From positions 248,001 to 312,000 of the forward strand of contig CBFFRP010000218.1 in the NCBI GenBank assembly GCA_965644295.1: DNA of 64,000 nucleotides, in the 5' to 3' direction. Position 1 is the first letter of the stretch. Each line of letters begins with the position of its first letter. The translations under genes were made by a program, and so were the position numbers. The DNA is from Paraphysomonas bandaiensis. Taxonomy: Eukaryota; Protista; Chrysophyceae. Below, piece by piece: positions 40,988 through 63,112 of this stretch. Under the pieces are notes generated by a model. The model was not told where the DNA came from and did not search any database. It saw only the letters and a program-made list of their open reading frames with translations.

Positions 40988-43594
40988 GTATAACTTATCT
41001 GTGTATCATATTATATTCTGTGCTCTGTATATGTAGCAATAATGCGAAGTGTTGGAGCTGGTAGTTACTTCAGTTAGTTGTAGCCGGGATGAATGCTTAT
41101 ATATGATGAGTTTAACACAAGAAAACAATACGGAATATGGAATACGTACCTCTGTAATCGTACCAGTATATCCTTGCGAGATAATCCATATGGCGGCAAA
41201 GAAATCAGCTTTTTTACGTTGTTTAAACAATAAAACGTTGGTTTTTAATTATGATTAACATATTCCCTAGTATTCCCACAACGTTCAGAGTGTATTGTTC
41301 TATGAGTAGGAATTCCTACATATGAAGTCCGACACTCAAAAAACGATTGTAGAGGTTTTCGCTCATGGCTTGAAGAGCACTACGATCATGTATCACTATC
41401 GTATCTGCCTGGATATTGATGCATATCGTCTCAATGGACTTTCTAAAGGTGAAGTTTTTTCACCTCCATATATACTCTATCTACAGACACACTCTGCACT
41501 ACTCAACAGACACTATTCGTAGATGATGAGATGAGGCCAAACGGGGCACCGTACTCTGACTAGTTGCATTTCATGGTAATCGAATTTCTTGAATATACAA
41601 ACTTCTTTGCGTTAGGCTTCTTCAGGGGCCATTTTGTTTGGGCTGGGAATAGACTCGTTACTTCCTATTAAAACCTTCAGGATATTAGACTTTTTCATAT
41701 ATTCTTTTCTATTTTTGTTCTTGTGGCTACCGCCTAGTCATCACTGGGCGAATCTTGGGTGGGGCTATTAGTACTCTCATGGCACTGGAACTCTATCACC
41801 CGTCCAAAACCGGAGTAGGAAAGGATATAACTTGGCCGTCGTAACATAGGGATACACAAGGATAATACGAGAGAGCTTTGCGAAGAAAATGTGCCGTAGT
41901 AGGGGTTATGTTTGATATATAAACTACAGGTAACGAATGATAGACTACAGGAATATATGACAGGGCTTCTGTAACTCGGAATAAATTGCATCATAAATAA
42001 TATAGTATATCTTACATTTTGCTGAATTCATACGGTCATCTTAGTTGCAATAGTTTTTTATATGACCTAGTATTACAGATATTTTCACCGCTGCTGGATT
42101 TGGCAGCTCTGTCATCGTCGAATTCGTTTGTGTTCTTTTAGCTGTATTCTTACATATTCAAAGTTAGCGTTGTATTAGTAAATTAAGGTACTATGAATAT
42201 TCTGTAGGAGGGTACAACGTATAACAATAGCGCATAAGACCAGGGATAGGGAACAGTATATGTCGATTTTGTGTGGTTTGGTTTTGACATTGCTGTACAA
42301 ACGGATCCGACTCACGAGAACTGAGCTAACAGATTATATTAAATTTAGCAATATTGTTTATATGTAAGTAGTACCGTTTATAGAATACTCTTAACGGCTG
42401 CTTTAATGTACAATTCTATTCTTCATATTTAAAATTTAGGGGCTATAGATACTAGCGTTCTCTTGAAACCATATTGCAATAGGCATTGGTGGGAATATTT
42501 TTCTTTTCTTATCAATAACAGTAATTACTGTTCACTCTGAGTAGCATTAACAGCAACGACAACATCAATGATCAATACAATGTGATAACAACAGTAACAA
42601 TGTATATGGCATATGTTATAACACCTAAGAACATCGGTGGCATAATTGATTTTTGATTAAAAGAATCGCGTCTAGAGTTACATAATGAACATATCCACAA
42701 CGAGCCTGAGTTTTTTCCATCACTACATCGATATACATTCAAGAATTCATACAGCAAATGCAAACAGTCTTTATCACCCATTATAGAACACACGTGCCTC
42801 TGGGTAGTGAATTTAATTCCTATAGTGGAAAGGTTAACAAGTCGGGTATTTCGTCAGTATCTAGCCGCAAGACATAAGATACGACCGCAACAGCTTCAGA
42901 TTACACGGATAATGGCCCACTTACGACTGATTCTAGTAAAAATTTAAAAACATTATCGTATTATTACCTTCCTATATAATAGGGAATCACTCATTAGATG
43001 TGCATCTTGTAGTCATTGAACTCATTGGGAAAAGTGAAAGGTATAAAAAGGATACCGTAAGATTCTAAGAATATATCTGGTTGCCTATGATACCGGAAAT
43101 GCTGACAACAATGACGACAATGGTATGAGATGACGGAATTGGCTATACAGAAAGTCTATTTTCTATACATATATGCAATTCCTACCCGAGATATTGTGAT
43201 ATGCACAGCACTCCCCCTGGATGAAAGATTCTACAGAGTGGGTGAAACACAACAATATGCATATTCATGGATATTCATAATAATTTTCAGGGCATTTTCT
43301 TCAGATCTGCTTTCTCGTGTTTTTAGTATAAACTCCCTAAAAAAGTCTTGAAAATCCCAGAAAATCCCAGAAAATCCCAAGTCGGAAGTGTGTTGGATTT
43401 GGAAGTCTATCTGGACAATTCCGGACTATCTCCACATTGTAGACAACTTCGTACATCACACCCACATCATACCTATGTGGGGTATACACACAAATTAGAA
43501 AAGATACCGAACGACGCGAAGAAACATATACATAACTCATTCTCTAAATAATTGAAGTACTAAACGCTAAGAGTGTTACTTAAATTAACTGTGT

Positions 43595-46500
43595 GATGGG
43601 AGAGCACAGAGATTATCATCAAGAGTATTACAGCGGTGGTCTGGGCAGTAGAGATAACAGGACAGGGGGGATGTACTTCGTTGAATCAGATATGCATCCT
43701 CAGAGTGGTAATAATCAAACCATTCGAGAGAATCAGACGCCAGCCGCAGACGAGCACGAAGATACGGATTCTTTCTCATCTTTTTGGAGCGCTCGTGTGG
43801 GTGAGCATCTGCAAAACCCATCCAGCCAATCAGATAGACACGACACAGCTGAACACCCCTCTGATGACCACTCACTGAGAGATGTAAAGATACAACAGCG
43901 TCAGGCGATAAAGAATCGTGAAGATTATAGAGTCAAAGAGTTGACTCACGACTACGATGCCTGGGATGAAAAGGAGCAACTACGACGCTATGAAGAAAGT
44001 CAAGAGCTTGAAAAAGAGCGGTGGCGAAAAAAACAGCAGAAACTACGCGACCAAAAAGCTGAATCTGAGAGGAGAAGACAACAAGAAATGCAAGAGTTGC
44101 AAGACAAGGAAAAGAAGGAAAAGGAGCATATGTGGAGGGAGCGAGAAGGGGTAATTGATACTGAATGTGAGAGTAGAAGACAGGATGAAGTCGACATGGG
44201 GGCGGTAAGAGAGCATCGTGAACTCCGGAAACAAGAGTTGCAAGACAAGGAAAAGAAGGAAAAGGAGCATATGTGGAGGGAGCGAGAAGGGGTAATTGAT
44301 GCTGAACTTGAGAGTAGAAGACAGGATGAAGTCGACATGGGGGCGGTAAGAGAGCATCATGAACTCCGGAAACAAGAGTTGCAAGACAAGGAAAAGAAGG
44401 GAAAGGAGCATGTTCAAAAGGAGCGAGAAGGTGTAATTGATGCTGAATCTGAGAGTAGAAGACAGGATGAAGCCGACATGAGGGCAATAAGAGAGCATCG
44501 TGAGCTCCGGAAACAAGAGTTGCAAGACAAGGAAAAGAAGGGAAAGGAGCATGTTCAAAAGGAGCGAGAAGGTGTAATTGATGCTGAATCTGAGAGTAGA
44601 AGACAGGATGAAGCCGACATGAGGGCAATAAGAGAGCATCGTGAGCTCCGGAAACAAGAGTTGCAAGACAAGGAAAAGAAGCATATGTGGAGGGAGCGAG
44701 AAGGTGTAATTGATGCTGAATCTGAGAGTAGAAGACAGTATGATTCCGACATGGGGGCAATAAGAGAGCATCGTGAACTCCGGAAACAAGCGTTGCAAGA
44801 CAAGGAAAAGAAGGAAAAGGAGCATGTTCAAAAGGAGCGAGAAGGTGTAATTGATGCTGAACTTGAGAGTAGAAGACAGGATGAAGCCGACATGAGGGCA
44901 ATCAGAGAGCATCGTCAACGTATGTACCTGAGTAGTTTGCGTGGTGATTTTGAAAGCAGTAGTGGGATTGCTGCGGAAGTCGAAGGCCAATCACATTCGT
45001 CTGTTGTTTTGGACAGCGGTCCTATCAAATCGGGAGGTACTGACCAGTGGGAATGTGAAAGGTGCACGTTCCTCAATAGCAATGAGCTTAGAGTGTGTGA
45101 GATGTGTGATATCCCGAGGGAACGAAAAACGGAAGTTGCTGGTAATTATGGCAGATCCCCTCCTGCTAAATATGTGGGTACCGGTGAGCATCCTCAAGAG
45201 ATACCATTTGATTACGGAAGGAGAGTATATCATGTATTATCCGGTACCAGCAGTCAGTATACCGCAGGGGCAGTGTCAGCATGCACCACAATTGCTCTTC
45301 AGGCTGTTCATAGTATACTCAATGCATTGACTGACTCAAGATTTCCTTACGGGTGCTCCCCTGCACTGATAGATGACATTGTCAGATTAGGTTCGACCTA
45401 CAAAGGTGATTTTCATCAGGACCTCAACGAAGTTCTGAAAACCCGGCGAGATCTAACTGCGCACGAGGAGAAAGGACTCAGACCGGTAACCCCTTACTCG
45501 ACACAGTACTTTTCTTTATATATTTATTTGTACAGGTGGGTACAATGGTCGATGTCTCGCCTCAGAACCCAGTGCCAGGCCTTCGCCGCGGGCTGGAGTG
45601 GAACCGTTCACTGAAGGCTAATGTGGCTTGTGTATTAACATGTCAGGCGCAGTCAATATGCGTGGTGTATGTATATAGCCCCTCCTTGTCCCCACATACT
45701 GATTCTGATGTGAAGTTTATCCTATTTGACAGCCACTCCAGACAGCACAATGGTGTCAATTATGGGGCATGTTTGCTATTTTTTAATAGCTTGGATGACG
45801 TTTGTCACTACATACAGCTTCTCTTTCCCTCCATTGATATGCCTGCTCTCTCTATACAAAGCGAGTTTGAGCAAGCTCAGTATGCGGCTATAACTGTGGG
45901 GCAAGCGGATTTCTTTTGTCTAAAACGTTCTTGGTCGATGAGACCTGATGCTATGTTGCAATCGAACCCGAGTACACCCCTTGAGGAGTTTCAGAGATCA
46001 GGCTCTATATGCTCATCAACAGGATATCAGACTCCCGGCAGTGTACAGTATAATATACATGATGAATTTGACAGGGAGCGAATTAGAGCTATTGAGCTGA
46101 CAAGGGATCAAGCAATCGAGAGGGAGATGAAATTACTGGCAGATATTAGAGATTTGCTAATGGAACAGCGGGCTTTACAAGTTGCCCTCAGTTGTGAGAA
46201 AGACGAACACGTCAAAACGAAGGAAGCTCTAGCGAAGAAGACTATTTTGTTAGACAATATTGAGTACAGGCTTCTGCGGGCAGAGGAGGATGCCCAAAAT
46301 TTTAAAGACAGGTCTCTCAGTCTCGAAGTCCTGCTCAAGGAGTGTCTGCATGAAAAGAACACACACCAAACCCAACGTTTGCCCTGTGATGATGATGTTG
46401 ATAGTACCCATCGGTTAGAGCATAAAGACCAGGCGCGCGGAGGTGAATCCAGCTTAATGTGCTCTACTTCAATTTTTCTGACTGCAAGTATTGTAGGCTC

Positions 46501-47426
46501 TCGTCGTATTATTGGTGATTGCTTTATGAATGGATTGAATGTAATACAAATGGAAACAGACAAGATGATTGCACAGCAAATGGAGGAGGAAGAGATGCGC
46601 TTGGCCGAGGATGCTGCCATGGCCATGAAATTGATGCAGGAAACAGTTTTCTGTTGCACTATTTGTAGGGACGACGAGGTGCGATCACAATAGTATTACT
46701 GCATTATGTGATCTGACGATTTTTCAGGTCTCATACGAGGACATGTTTGACCTTGAACATGCTGATCATAAGCTATGTAGGGTTTGTGCAAGGTGAATAA
46801 TGTGCAATATTCTTGTGTTATGATCATTTCTATCAAACAGTCGCTATATACAAACAGCGCTGAAAGATAGAACTGTGCCTGTTCGCTGCCCTTTCGAAGG
46901 ATGCGACCTACACTTATCGGAGAGTAAATGCTTCGAGGTATTATCGTGTGAAGAGCAAGAGTTTTGGCTTGAACTTTCTAAACGTCCTCAAGGCGATCCC
47001 GGGTTCAGACAATGCCCTGTACCTGACTGCAAAGGGTTTGACCTCAAAGATGACGAAGTCGAGGCCGATTGTACCTGTCGAATCTGTCACCATCACTGGT
47101 GTTCGAATTGCCAGGTCGATCTAATTGAATCCCAGCACACTGGAATATCCTGCAGTGCCTATCAGCAGTGGAAGAAAGACAATGAGACAGGAGACGAAAA
47201 GATGGATAATCTTTTGCAGGAAGGGTTGGAAGATAAACGTGGAAAAGATCGTATGCGTCGTTGCCCTTCCTGTCAGCGTCCCTGGTCGAAGGATGAAGCC
47301 TGCAACCACGTGGTTTGCGCGGTTGCATTTGGGGGGTGTGGAGTTCACTTCTGCTTCAAGTGTGCAAATTTTTCCGCCAGCACTGCAACGGAGATATACA
47401 ATCATCAGCCTTCGTGCAGAGGATGA
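43595..47426 (+). CDS. RBR E3 ubiquitin ligase with 40-aa repeats, NZF/RanBP2 zinc finger, VTD-like cysteine-protease domain, coiled coil and MIU-like motifs
   Basis: WECERCTFLN..CEMC; SQY..SACTTIA and FILFDSH; DAAMAMKLMQE; RING1 CTIC..H..HKLCRVC..CPFEGC; IBR CPVPDC..CRICHHHWCSNC; RING2 CPSC..ACNHVVC..CGVHFCFKC. Frame-preserving introns 45486-45535, ~46679-46727 and ~46792-46840. Confidence 0.88.
44092..44915. repeat. ~120-bp coding tandem repeat, ~7 copies
   Basis: QELQDKEKKEKEHMWREREGVIDAESESRRQDEADMRAIREHRELRK-type units. Confidence 0.95.
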
Positions 47427-47649
47427 AATTAATTTATCGTATCATGTTTCTATAATGTATGTTTTATGGTTTTACTGATACGGTGGATATGGCAATCAAT
47501 ATTTCTAATATGTCACTTAATATTCTACTATTGATTTTACTACATATTCTACTATTGATTCTACTGCATCTATTCTGAAAGTGTAGTAAAATGGGGTCAT
47601 TATGATACAAGTCAAGGATAGAGACAATATGACGTACGTAGCAGTTAGT

Positions 47650-48399: not shown

Positions 48400-49696
48400 A
48401 TCTAGAACTACGCATAAGGAAACAGGTATAGTAGATATGGAATTTAAAATATCTGAAAACCTCAAGAGATACATGGAAACATCAACACCTATTACCATGA
48501 CAAACGGCTCAAAGCCTTTAGGATGAGACCACATTTGAAACGCTACTATAAGCAGAAATCCCATGAAATGGAGACCCTTACACCCAGAATCCAACATACC
48601 CACTCACCTCCAACTTAGGCTACGTCAATTTTACCGTGCTAAAGGAATCCCAAAGCAGCTCAAATAACGCAACATATGTCGGAGCAGGACACCAGGTTTC
48701 TATGCCAAGCTCCACACTCGTGCGTATAACCATACTCCAGACCCTCCCATTGTTCAGGAAACAACCTGACCCCCTACGATCAAATAGGAGGTCTACACTT
48801 TGATAAAGCATCTATACCGTCACGAGCACAGCTCCATCTGGTGAAGAGACCGGATCATGGCACCAATTCTAAAGAAACCTAGTGACTCATCACAAACGCA
48901 TCTTAGACCCATATCAGTCTCCTTAAAAAGACGACCAAACATCTTACAATAAAAAACATTCAACAGAAGCTATTATGTCCCTTACATCATGGCTACTGCT
49001 GAATGGAGGAAATACTGCGACACACCTGTGAACAAGCGCGTAGATGGGGATGAAAGGATATGCACTCTACGTGACTTCAAGAAGGCCTCGAATCGATCAT
49101 TCGTAGTCTACTCGTCTTGCGTGGGCACAACATGGGGAGCCTCGCTGAGTGTTTGGAAGTCCTGGATGCAGATAGCCTCACTTGACCATGGACTCCCTCA
49201 ACAAAGTCGGACTCGCACCTTGGTGTTCTGGGGGATAAGAACCGGAGAGATTCTCTCTGGGAAACTAACGTGACCCGCAAACATAGTCAGCAGATATTCT
49301 TATGCACACTCATAGCCGAATGCTTGTGTGGTACAAGGGACACCAATAAGTGTCACTTGTGTAGACGTCTTTGGGCCCTGACGAATAAACAGGCATCCGG
49401 GAATGGGACCACCTCAAGGGCATCCGGGACAGGGCCCACCTAAAGGGTAACTTGGGTATTGGGCTGCCTGCTGAAGTCAAGCATCCGGGATGTTCACCTT
49501 AAGAACTCAGAGCGGAAGTGAACGCACCCTGGTGCTTGCGGCGACGCACAAGCAGCTTTCGTAGCATTAAATAGTAGGATAAAAAAAGGGTGTACTAATT
49601 AGTTACAGGTAGAGGTCTAACTAGTTTGTCTAGCATTCATTTAGCTACTAAGTTGGTGCAGGTTTTTAACGCCTATTGCTAATAATAAGACATTCA
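48400..49696 (+). mobile_element. Degenerate non-LTR retroelement 3' portion (left boundary uncertain)
   Basis: 49203-49696 is homologous to 62625-63112, and its end matches the TSD-flanked 3069-3162 insert. Upstream are broken coding-like frames. Confidence 0.6.
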
Positions 49697-50185
49697 ATAC
49701 ATGACCATGGCCTCAGTTCACGGCCAACCACATGAAGTACGAAACTAGGGCAAGGTACTCAGCAACAATTGTTACAATATCTCACACCACACATATGACG
49801 TCACGGCTGAAAGGGGTGCCACAGAGCTACTTGCACATGTGTTTTTCTCTTTACATACCTCTCTGCTGGCCAGAGAAATCATCACCATCTCTCAAGGATG
49901 AGCTCCCACCTATGGATGAACCACACCCCATCTTCATCCAGACTTGAGTAGGCAACTCTCCTAATAGCAACCCCTGACAGCAGACGACTTCACAAATATT
50001 CCCCCCAACAAATAGTAGACCATATCTCATCACTTGTGCTTTCTCTGGCATACTAATAGCCACCCAGAAAGTTATTTTCCTCGTGCACCCTCTCTACAGA
50101 GTGGGATTCAGACTGCTCCCTTGTATCTCACGATGAGACCGCATTCCACTCCACCTCCAAGCTATCAAACACATAGGCACCACTC

Positions 50186-61809: not shown

Positions 61810-62624
61810 GAGGCCAGCGCATTCGTTGAACGTTTGTAAGAGCAGGATGTAGTTATAATATTTTACTACGTGTAATGTTACTGCTTTGCAGCATACGTCT
61901 AGTCTCTGTTGTATTTAAAATTCTTATTGACTGTTGGTTTAGCTCACTTCAGCTAGAATTGGTTATACTCTTGTAAAAAAGAAGTTGAAATCTTAATGAT
62001 TATTACGTTCTTGTAATTATGAGTCGAGTACGAGAAACACTTTCTTACACAAAGCTTTCTTAGACATCATGGCGTGTAGGGAAGTGTGAAATAATCACTT
62101 GTCACATCCTAAGTAACTGATCGTTAAAATATAATCTATATCTATTATCAGTTATTGTCATTAATTTATAGATTTATATTCTCTCTACTACCAATCAATA
62201 TTTTATCAGATCTCAGATAAACACGATCTGAAACGTATTTTTTTTATTAATTCATGTATTATAGTCTATGCTCTATGCCACAATGGTAATGCATGGCATT
62301 GATGGCCATTAATAGTAATGCCATTATAATTGCCGGGAACTGGACTACCATTAATGGGCCATTATTGGTTACCAGGCCCTGGACTATGCAGAGTGTGTAT
62401 AGTCTATAGTTGCTTTTATTCAACGGTAAATGTCTTAAATACAGCTTTAATTGCATAAAAATAGCAAAGCTTCACATTTTGTTGATTAACTAGGATGTAT
62501 AGATTTTCAATCTCGACACCTTATAGCATTTCTATGCAAGGTCATTTACTAACTAACTAACTGCGTCAATTTTGCTTGACTCTTAAAAAAATTTTTTTAG
62601 TGCAACTTTTAGCCAGATAGATAA

Positions 62625-63112
62625 AAAAGTCAGACTCGCACTTTTTCGCGGTGTTCTGGGGGATAAGTACCGGAGATATTATATATTCGGGAAATTAACG
62701 TGAGCCGCATATATGTAATCAGCAGATAGTGTTTTGCCCACTCATGGCCAGTAAATGTTTGTGCAGTACAAGATACACTACTAGTAAAAGTCATTTTTGT
62801 AGACGTCTTTGGGCCTTGACGAATAGACAAGCATCCGGAAATGGGCTTCACCTCAAGAGGATCAGGGGTATTGGGCTACCTGCTGAAAGGTAACCGGGGT
62901 ATTGTTGGGCTGCCCGCTGAAGTCAAGCATCGGGGCTAGTAGGTCACCTTAAGGTCAGAAAACAAAAGTGGTTGCACCTTGGTGGGATATCACTAGCGGG
63001 ATATCGTAGCGTTAACTAGCGGGATATCAGAGTTAAGCACTAGTTAGTTAAATTACTTTGCTACATTAGTTCTGACTCTTACACGCCTATTGCTACTAAT
63101 CAGACATTCACT
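62625..63112 (+). mobile_element. 5'-truncated copy of the same non-LTR retroelement family
   Basis: Collinear similarity to 49203-49696 (GACTCGCAC..GGTGTTCTGGGGGATAAG, GTAGACGTCTTTGGGCC, GCTGAAGTCAAGCATC, CAGACATTCAC). Confidence 0.75.

Follow-up and report, generated by a model that had tools for sequence, protein, structure and literature searches.

A VTD-RBR gene in the chrysophyte Paraphysomonas bandaiensis predicted to code for a deubiquitinase and a ubiquitin ligase in one protein

Deubiquitinases (DUBs) of the VTD family were defined, and the structures 8ADB, 8ADC and 8ADD solved, in Erven et al. 2022 (PMC9741609). The same study placed VTDs in stramenopiles and described fusions of a VTD to a RING1-IBR-RING2 (RBR) ubiquitin ligase (E3) in most Agaricomycetes, and the fusion was published as an Agaricomycete-only event of approximately 185 million years ago; the text of the supplement mentions neither diatoms nor RBR. 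Bacterial, fungal and Naegleria VTDs prefer or require K6 linkages (PMC9741609). Here we describe a gene located at positions 43596-47426, on the plus strand, of a 64,000-nucleotide stretch of the Paraphysomonas bandaiensis genome (contig CBFFRP010000218.1, positions 248,001 to 312,000 of the forward strand; hereafter the window). This gene belongs to the VTD-RBR class known from Agaricomycetes, and we consider it likely that it is one nuclear gene coding for a protein of approximately 1227 residues in which an Npl4/RanBP2-type zinc finger (NZF), a VTD, a long helix and an RBR follow one another, with predicted DUB and E3 functions. An earlier note on this DNA, which proposed a combined DUB and E3 from the sequence alone, had stated that no VTD-RBR fusion was described, which is wrong given the fungal fusion published in 2022 (PMC9741609). 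The new points are that the fusion occurs in an algal lineage, that it recurs in a further marine lineage that is only distantly related, and that NZF and MIU-like modules are added to it.

Like its Agaricomycete counterparts, whose VTDs are K6-specific in vitro (PMC9741609), the algal protein carries the VTD N-terminal to the RBR in one protein. It differs from them in being about twice as long, in the addition of an NZF, an array of 47-residue repeats and two helices (one of 100 residues, the other MIU-like), and in occurring in a different lineage (a marine alga and marine protists). Wc-VTD1 of Waddlia chondrophila (8ADB/8ADC) is a bacterial effector without RBR, NZF or MIU, relative to which the algal VTD carries 11 extra residues ahead of the D-S-H strand. 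Heterolobosean VTDs (Willaertia magna KAL9653372.1 and Pharyngomonas kirbyi) have the same Gln, Cys and D-S-H followed by a helical tail and no RBR; the characterised heterolobosean member is Nf-VTD of Naegleria fowleri, and the likeness seen here runs through relatives in that group, not through Nf-VTD itself. The herpesviral tegument USP M48 (2J7Q) and the helitron domain DrT1-VTD2 (8ADD) belong to a subfamily that cleaves K48, K63 and K11 linkages and is found in a viral or transposon context. A20, as well as HOIP together with OTULIN or CYLD, share with the algal protein the idea of joining ubiquitin removal, ubiquitin attachment and NZF-type readers. This is an analogy only, since the DUB parts of A20, OTULIN and CYLD are OTU or USP domains that are not homologous to VTD and since the E3 of A20 is not an RBR. 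The algal protein is also not of the A20 type, as it has no OTU domain and its E3 is an RBR.

The VTD and RBR domains

By sequence profile and predicted fold, the middle domain of the protein (approximately 230 residues) is a VTD-type papain-like domain with its catalytic residues intact. Searches were run exon by exon, or on natural stop-free sequences and database homologs (referred to by P numbers), rather than on the joined protein. With Pfam on single exons the middle domain has no match, Herpes_teg_N included, and single-sequence searches of the PDB with each VTD half returned noise only. A homolog search with the N-terminal half found none within its length band of 347-1104 residues, a result for which the band is the likely cause and which is not evidence of absence. 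When a profile of the C-terminal half was run against 1.84 billion representatives, only 24 credible relatives were obtained, which indicates that the family is rare. A half-domain profile recovers heterolobosean proteins from Willaertia and Pharyngomonas with E values from 7e-9 to 9e-5.

When aligned with one another, 30 segments of the family (alignment A2) show a conserved Gln, a Cys nine residues further on, a near-invariant Asp-Ser-His-x-Arg and a Gly-Ala, with D-S-H invariant among the close homologs. The four residues Gln, Cys, Asp and His (Gln554, Cys563, Asp695 and His697 in spliced numbering) are intact in the window gene, in a nearby paralog described below and in nearly every homolog. 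An hmmsearch of the PDB sequences with profile A2 matched Wc-VTD1 with an E value of 3.4e-11 over 171 positions and zebrafish helitron DrT1-VTD2 with an E value of 1.1e-5, and did not match herpesviral M48. In the alignment with Wc-VTD1 the family Cys falls on C313 and D-S-H on D440-P-H442, which are the residues altered in the mutants C313A, D440A and H442A (PMC9741609). The aligned Wc-VTD1 chain has its Cys at residue 35 and its Asp at residue 162, 127 residues apart, which equals the spacing between C313 and D440. Note that the text of PMC9741609 gives the cysteine as Cys319 and a figure legend gives C313A; the 127-residue spacing to Asp440 fits 313, and Cys319 is apparently a slip. The residue pattern of the flipped active site, a Cys followed by Asp-x-His with Asp and His two residues apart, is conserved across the family in the alignment.

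The fold was assessed with an AlphaFold model of the paralog's domain (L006:4601-5338, built from alignment A2), which has a pLDDT of 86.3 and a pTM of 0.86. With Foldseek the top six matches to this model are all VTD structures at a probability of 1.0. Beyond the VTDs the structural comparison shows a gap; the next matches are AvrPphB (11.4), further proteases of the YopT/MCF type (7-10), UfSP (6.7) and ZUFSP (5.0). Thus, the VTD-like identity that the earlier note had proposed stands on a profile match to Wc-VTD1, on the fold, and on the aligned Cys, Asp and His; a papain-like fold and an aligned Cys-His-Asp triad, the absence of which that note had named as telling against the domain, are both present. 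As a candidate member of the K6 subfamily, the domain is closest in sequence to Wc-VTD1, to the heterolobosean proteins and to a fungal cluster. The model has a helix at residues 225-235, and the alignment to Wc-VTD1 extends to residue 493, past alpha-9.

For the RBR, Pfam IBR (E 3e-10) and IBR_1 (E 6.3e-7) are matched in the last exon, and an RBR profile (A4) matches ARIH2 (9e-9), RNF216 (1.5e-8) and HOIP (2e-6) across RING1-IBR-RING2, with its positions 6-211 aligned to ARIH2 138-330 so that the order RING1, IBR, RING2 is observed. The predicted catalytic cysteine of RING2, in the motif ACNH, is coded by 47301-47303 and corresponds to Cys1187, aligned with the CNH of ARIH2. These matches bear out the RING1-IBR-RING2 with an ACNH cysteine that had been read from the sequence earlier. 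The zinc ligands 3 and 4 of RING1 read H-x2-H in this clade, as opposed to the usual C-x-H; P0015 has Cys there. More generally, every feature that the earlier note had listed is present where it had been placed, and this agreement is far beyond chance because homologs score down to an E value of 4e-36.

Exon structure and a probable single polypeptide

The order of elements along the protein is a repeat region, the NZF, the VTD domain, a disordered linker, a helix of approximately 100 residues, an MIU-like helix and RING1-IBR-RING2. The features of the gene are as follows.

43596-45485, plus strand: exon 1, of 630 codons when counted from the first ATG, in open reading frame 43593-45614, ending at a GT donor after a full codon
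44091-44919, plus strand: tandem repeat of 141 nt x 5.9, in frame, giving 47-residue E/K/R-rich units (Tandem Repeats Finder, 90% matches, score 1273)
45048-45107, plus strand: NZF with the spacing C-x2-C-T-F-x-N-x6-C-E-M-C
45195-45485, plus strand: N-terminal half of the VTD, with the Gln codon at 45255-45257 and the codon of the predicted nucleophile Cys at 45282-45284
45486-45535, plus strand: intron 1, 50 nt, beginning GTAACC and ending GTACAG, inside the VTD domain
45536-45928, plus strand: C-terminal half of the VTD with Asp-Ser-His (Asp 45728-45730, His 45734-45736)
46058-46369, plus strand: long single helix, a candidate coiled coil (exon-2 residues 175-278, 104 residues, AlphaFold pLDDT 82-90)
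46448-46642, plus strand: second long helix leading into RING1 (exon-2 residues 305-369, AlphaFold model)
46559-46594, plus strand: MIU-like motif D-x-hydrophobic-x-A-x-x-hydrophobic-E-E-E, in the second helix
46616-46630, plus strand: second Ala-centred stretch, in the second helix
46652-46678, plus strand: last part of exon 2, where RING1 begins with its first Cys pair
46679-46727, plus strand: intron 2, 49 nt, GT..AG, inside RING1
46728-46792, plus strand: exon 3, 65 nt, middle of RING1
46793-46840, plus strand: intron 3, 48 nt, GT..AG, inside RING1
46841-47426, plus strand: exon 4, which completes RING1 and holds the IBR, RING2 and the stop codon

On the plus strand the sequence contains three open frames (43593-45614, 45536-46693 and 46875-47426). 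A single frame of 1227 codons in four exons results once three GT..AG introns of 50, 49 and 48 nt are removed, with the ATG at 43596 taken as the start of the model and the stop codon at 47424-47426. The two introns inside RING1 were missing from the earlier note; once they are removed the spliced RING1 is colinear with the unbroken RING1 of the homologs P0001, P0002, P0004 and P0005, and a tblastn match with P0004 spans 46725-47429. As for the 50-nt intron at 45486-45535, which that note had called frame-preserving, the intron itself is upheld and the description is not, since 50 is not a multiple of three and it is splicing that restores the register; reading through it leads to a stop at 45614.

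The position of intron 1 is common to P0003, P0004 and P0032-P0034. Specifically, P0003 and P0032-P0034 terminate exactly at this position, P0001, P0002 and P0005 begin there, and P0004 contains a 39-nt GT..AG segment that is by chance in frame. In the paralog intron 1 is 54 nt long, 4 nt longer than in the window copy. A 4-nt insertion or deletion between two conserved coding halves is tolerable only in non-coding sequence, which indicates that intron 1 is real. The translated intron of the paralog (model residues 102-116) is the sole stretch of the AlphaFold model with a pLDDT below 50.

Several observations bear on the claim of the earlier note that VTD and RBR lie in one polypeptide. No stop interrupts the frame between 45536 and the donor within RING1 at 46678, RING1 begins inside the same exon, and the reading frame ends in a complete RBR. 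Homologs carry both domains in a single open reading frame: P0004 is one frame of 886 residues (L007:3001-5661) with NZF, VTD, helices and RBR that contains only the 39-nt in-frame intron, and P0015, which is much more distant, is one frame of 1008 residues with VTD, CCCH/CCHC fingers, helices and RBR and has ten cluster members in marine metagenomes. The VTD-plus-RBR arrangement is thus conserved in single reading frames of two other lineages, and its presence there supports the single polypeptide, a claim that we retain.

The paralog is a 5' partial duplicate of the gene (G000:C218:242539-244962, L006:3539-5962) that lies approximately 3 kb before the window and approximately 50 kb upstream of the gene. 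It has an 807-residue open frame with NZF, VTD and helix that runs in frame across the 54-nt intron and is not followed by an RBR. Relative to window positions 43549-46228 it has approximately 91% nucleotide identity, after which the two copies diverge; the VTDs are 95-97% identical. The dN/dS ratio between the copies is 0.2-0.66, a value derived from 7-23 substitutions per segment, which are too few for significance.

Two further observations concern related sequence in the same neighbourhood. A diverged fragment on the minus strand at G000:C218:228202-228959 (L013:2702-3459), with 72% nucleotide identity to window positions 46723-47142, encodes only the helix end, RING1 and part of an IBR. 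RING2 is absent, as is any VTD in its vicinity, and the fragment represents either a relic or a portion of another gene. A dispersed repeat of approximately 500 bp (78-88% identity), found at window positions 49194-49699 and 62623-62887 (minus strand) and at L006:6220-6701, adjoins both gene copies and may be related to the gene duplication or to transposons.

Modules outside the catalytic domains

The NZF contains a T-F pair as well as a Met within its last Cys pair, a combination that we take to be a ubiquitin-binding signature. The helical elements were examined by modelling exon 2 by itself in AlphaFold (alignment A5). The model begins with its half of the VTD, which is followed by a disordered linker, a helix at residues 175-278, a disordered stretch and a helix at residues 305-369. 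The coiled coil and the MIU-like helices that had been proposed earlier both fit, as they coincide with the first and second of these helices, respectively. An MIU-like pattern, D-hydrophobic-x-x-A-x-x-hydrophobic-Q/E-E-E, is repeated at the equivalent position in P0001, P0002, P0004 and P0029. In P0002 and P0029 the counterpart reads A-x-x-[IL]-Q-x-E-E, which is presumably closer to the MIU core. The canonical MIU motif has a highly conserved Leu/Gln (PMC5824887). Judging by its sequence pattern, we call the motif at 46559-46594 MIU-like, as a candidate assignment.

At the N-terminal end, the array of 47-residue repeats is larger in the window gene than in the paralog. The orthologs carry an unrelated conserved N-terminal region instead of these repeats, and an upstream exon matching the N-terminal region of P0004 and P0032-P0034 was not found in the window. 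A different arrangement is observed in P0003 (309 residues, NCBI/JGI, from a 1154-nt contig), an exon-like open reading frame that consists of a VTD C-terminal half, a linker, an NZF and a VTD N-terminal half; this suggests that its organism carries two or more NZF-VTD modules in tandem within a single gene.

Predicted activities, alternatives and distribution of the fusion

In the mechanism that we propose, the NZF and the MIU-like helix would dock the protein on ubiquitin, ubiquitin chains or ubiquitinated material, the VTD would cleave isopeptide-linked ubiquitin chains, and the RBR would take ubiquitin from an E2 onto Cys1187 as a thioester and pass it to a substrate. The DUB is probably linkage-selective and, by analogy with Wc-VTD1, Nf-VTD and the fungal VTD-RBR proteins, possibly K6-preferring. 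It may strip auto-ubiquitination from the ligase, or else trim or edit chains that are made or found on shared substrates, which would resemble the editing by A20. Our confidence in these steps decreases in the order VTD cleavage, RBR thioester formation, recruitment by NZF and MIU-like helix, linkage selectivity, and protection or editing.

A number of points weigh against this reading. The VTD-only paralog, together with the VTD-only relatives from Tetraselmis chui (P0029), Willaertia, Pharyngomonas and Bolivina, indicates that the DUB can stand alone. Splicing and single-transcript status are deduced from sequence logic and homologs, and the model of the fold is that of the 95%-identical paralog with its in-frame intron translated, not that of the window product. 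The Pfam match of the NZF to Zn_ribbon_RanBP (E 2.8e-4, 20.5 bits) lies under the 27-bit cut-off, and some orthologs have other residues in place of its T-F pair. Since ligands 3 and 4 of RING1 read H-x2-H, it is not assured that this finger binds an E2. Finally, the activities of the algal clade, the DUB and E3 functions as well as the linkage preference and A20-like editing, are predictions, with the possible K6 preference extrapolated from relatives of approximately 20% identity.

Four other explanations were weighed against that of a single protein with an active VTD and an active RBR. One is that the VTD is a pseudo-enzyme, a ubiquitin-binding module that recognises ubiquitin for the RBR without cleaving it. 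Inactive VTD domains are reported in insects and transposons (PMC9741609, Fig. 1 legend), Bolivina P0023 has Gln in place of His, and fungal and Naegleria VTDs are unreactive with mono-ubiquitin probes (PMC9741609). However, the Gln, Cys, Asp and His are intact in both P. bandaiensis copies and in nearly every homolog, and K6 di-ubiquitin is cleaved by the fungal and Naegleria enzymes (PMC9741609), which share these motifs; we regard a pseudo-enzyme as unlikely. It is quite improbable that the target of the protease is a ubiquitin-like modifier such as NEDD8 or, as with YopT and AvrPphB, a substrate other than ubiquitin, given that every closest characterised D-x-H enzyme with the same fold cleaves ubiquitin chains (PMC9741609) and that the modules on either side, the NZF, the MIU-like helix and the RBR, all belong to the ubiquitin system. 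A YopT-type reading of the domain was rejected; in the structural comparison VTD structures rank above the YopT/MCF-type proteases.

The possibility of two genes, in which a VTD gene ends in the helical region, a separate RBR gene follows and the single frame is an annotation artefact, draws on the paralog, which has NZF, VTD and helix without RBR, and on the database models P0001 and P0002, which start after intron 1. The uninterrupted frame at 45536-46678, in which RING1 begins inside the exon, and the single open reading frames of P0004 and P0015 speak against it, and we judge it very improbable. Scarcely credible, and already disfavoured, is membership of the UfSP/ATG4 (C78 type) or plant DUC families. 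The C78-type proteins UfSP and ZUFSP are not the nearest fold, ranking behind the six VTD structures. Plant DUC proteins share the fold and have an active site in the order Cys-His-Asp, an aromatic gatekeeper and an N-terminal C2 domain, and their sequences do not resemble those of VTDs (DUC preprint). The D-S-H order, the sequence similarity of the domain to VTDs and the lack of a C2 domain speak against them; the D-S-H motif and the sequence match place the domain in VTD, not in DUC.

Regarding the relationship to the fungal fusions, a comparison of the paralog-domain model with the ESM Atlas gives as top structural neighbour a basidiomycete cluster of 92 members annotated 'RBR-type E3' (TM 0.71 over 204 residues, rmsd 2.8), and the same cluster is the top feature match of residues 200-886 of P0004 (0.94). 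In the Atlas feature search the RBR part alone matched generic IBR clusters, not the fungal VTD-RBR cluster, so that a shared origin of the fungal and algal fusions is neither shown nor excluded. A wider reading, which we offer tentatively, is that the VTD-RBR fusion is not private to Agaricomycetes and either arose repeatedly (in fungi, in the alga and in the P0015 lineage) or is an older unit transferred between lineages, and that the algal version would be a self-contained, linkage-selective (perhaps K6) chain editor equipped with NZF and MIU-like readers of its own. Among eukaryotic DUBs, VTDs are the class that was recognised last, and their discoverers call the role of the K6-specific branch enigmatic. 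The existence of second and third lineages with a VTD-RBR, in the alga accompanied by additional candidate ubiquitin readers, suggests that there is a functional meaning to the pairing, and the algal and P0015 fusions provide a concrete test of the published scenario of an Agaricomycetes-only fusion.

Two minor observations concern database sequences of this family. P0029 is a Tetraselmis chui transcript (MMETSP0491) with an N-terminal segment that appears ubiquitin-like by eye; VTDs are described as absent from plants (DUC preprint), and P0029 could be a genuine chlorophyte sequence or culture contamination. In regards to annotation, the public models P0001, P0002 and P0005 start at a Met just past the VTD intron and lack the half with the catalytic Cys, so that the VTD intron is a point at which database models are routinely truncated, with the DUB half hidden as a result.

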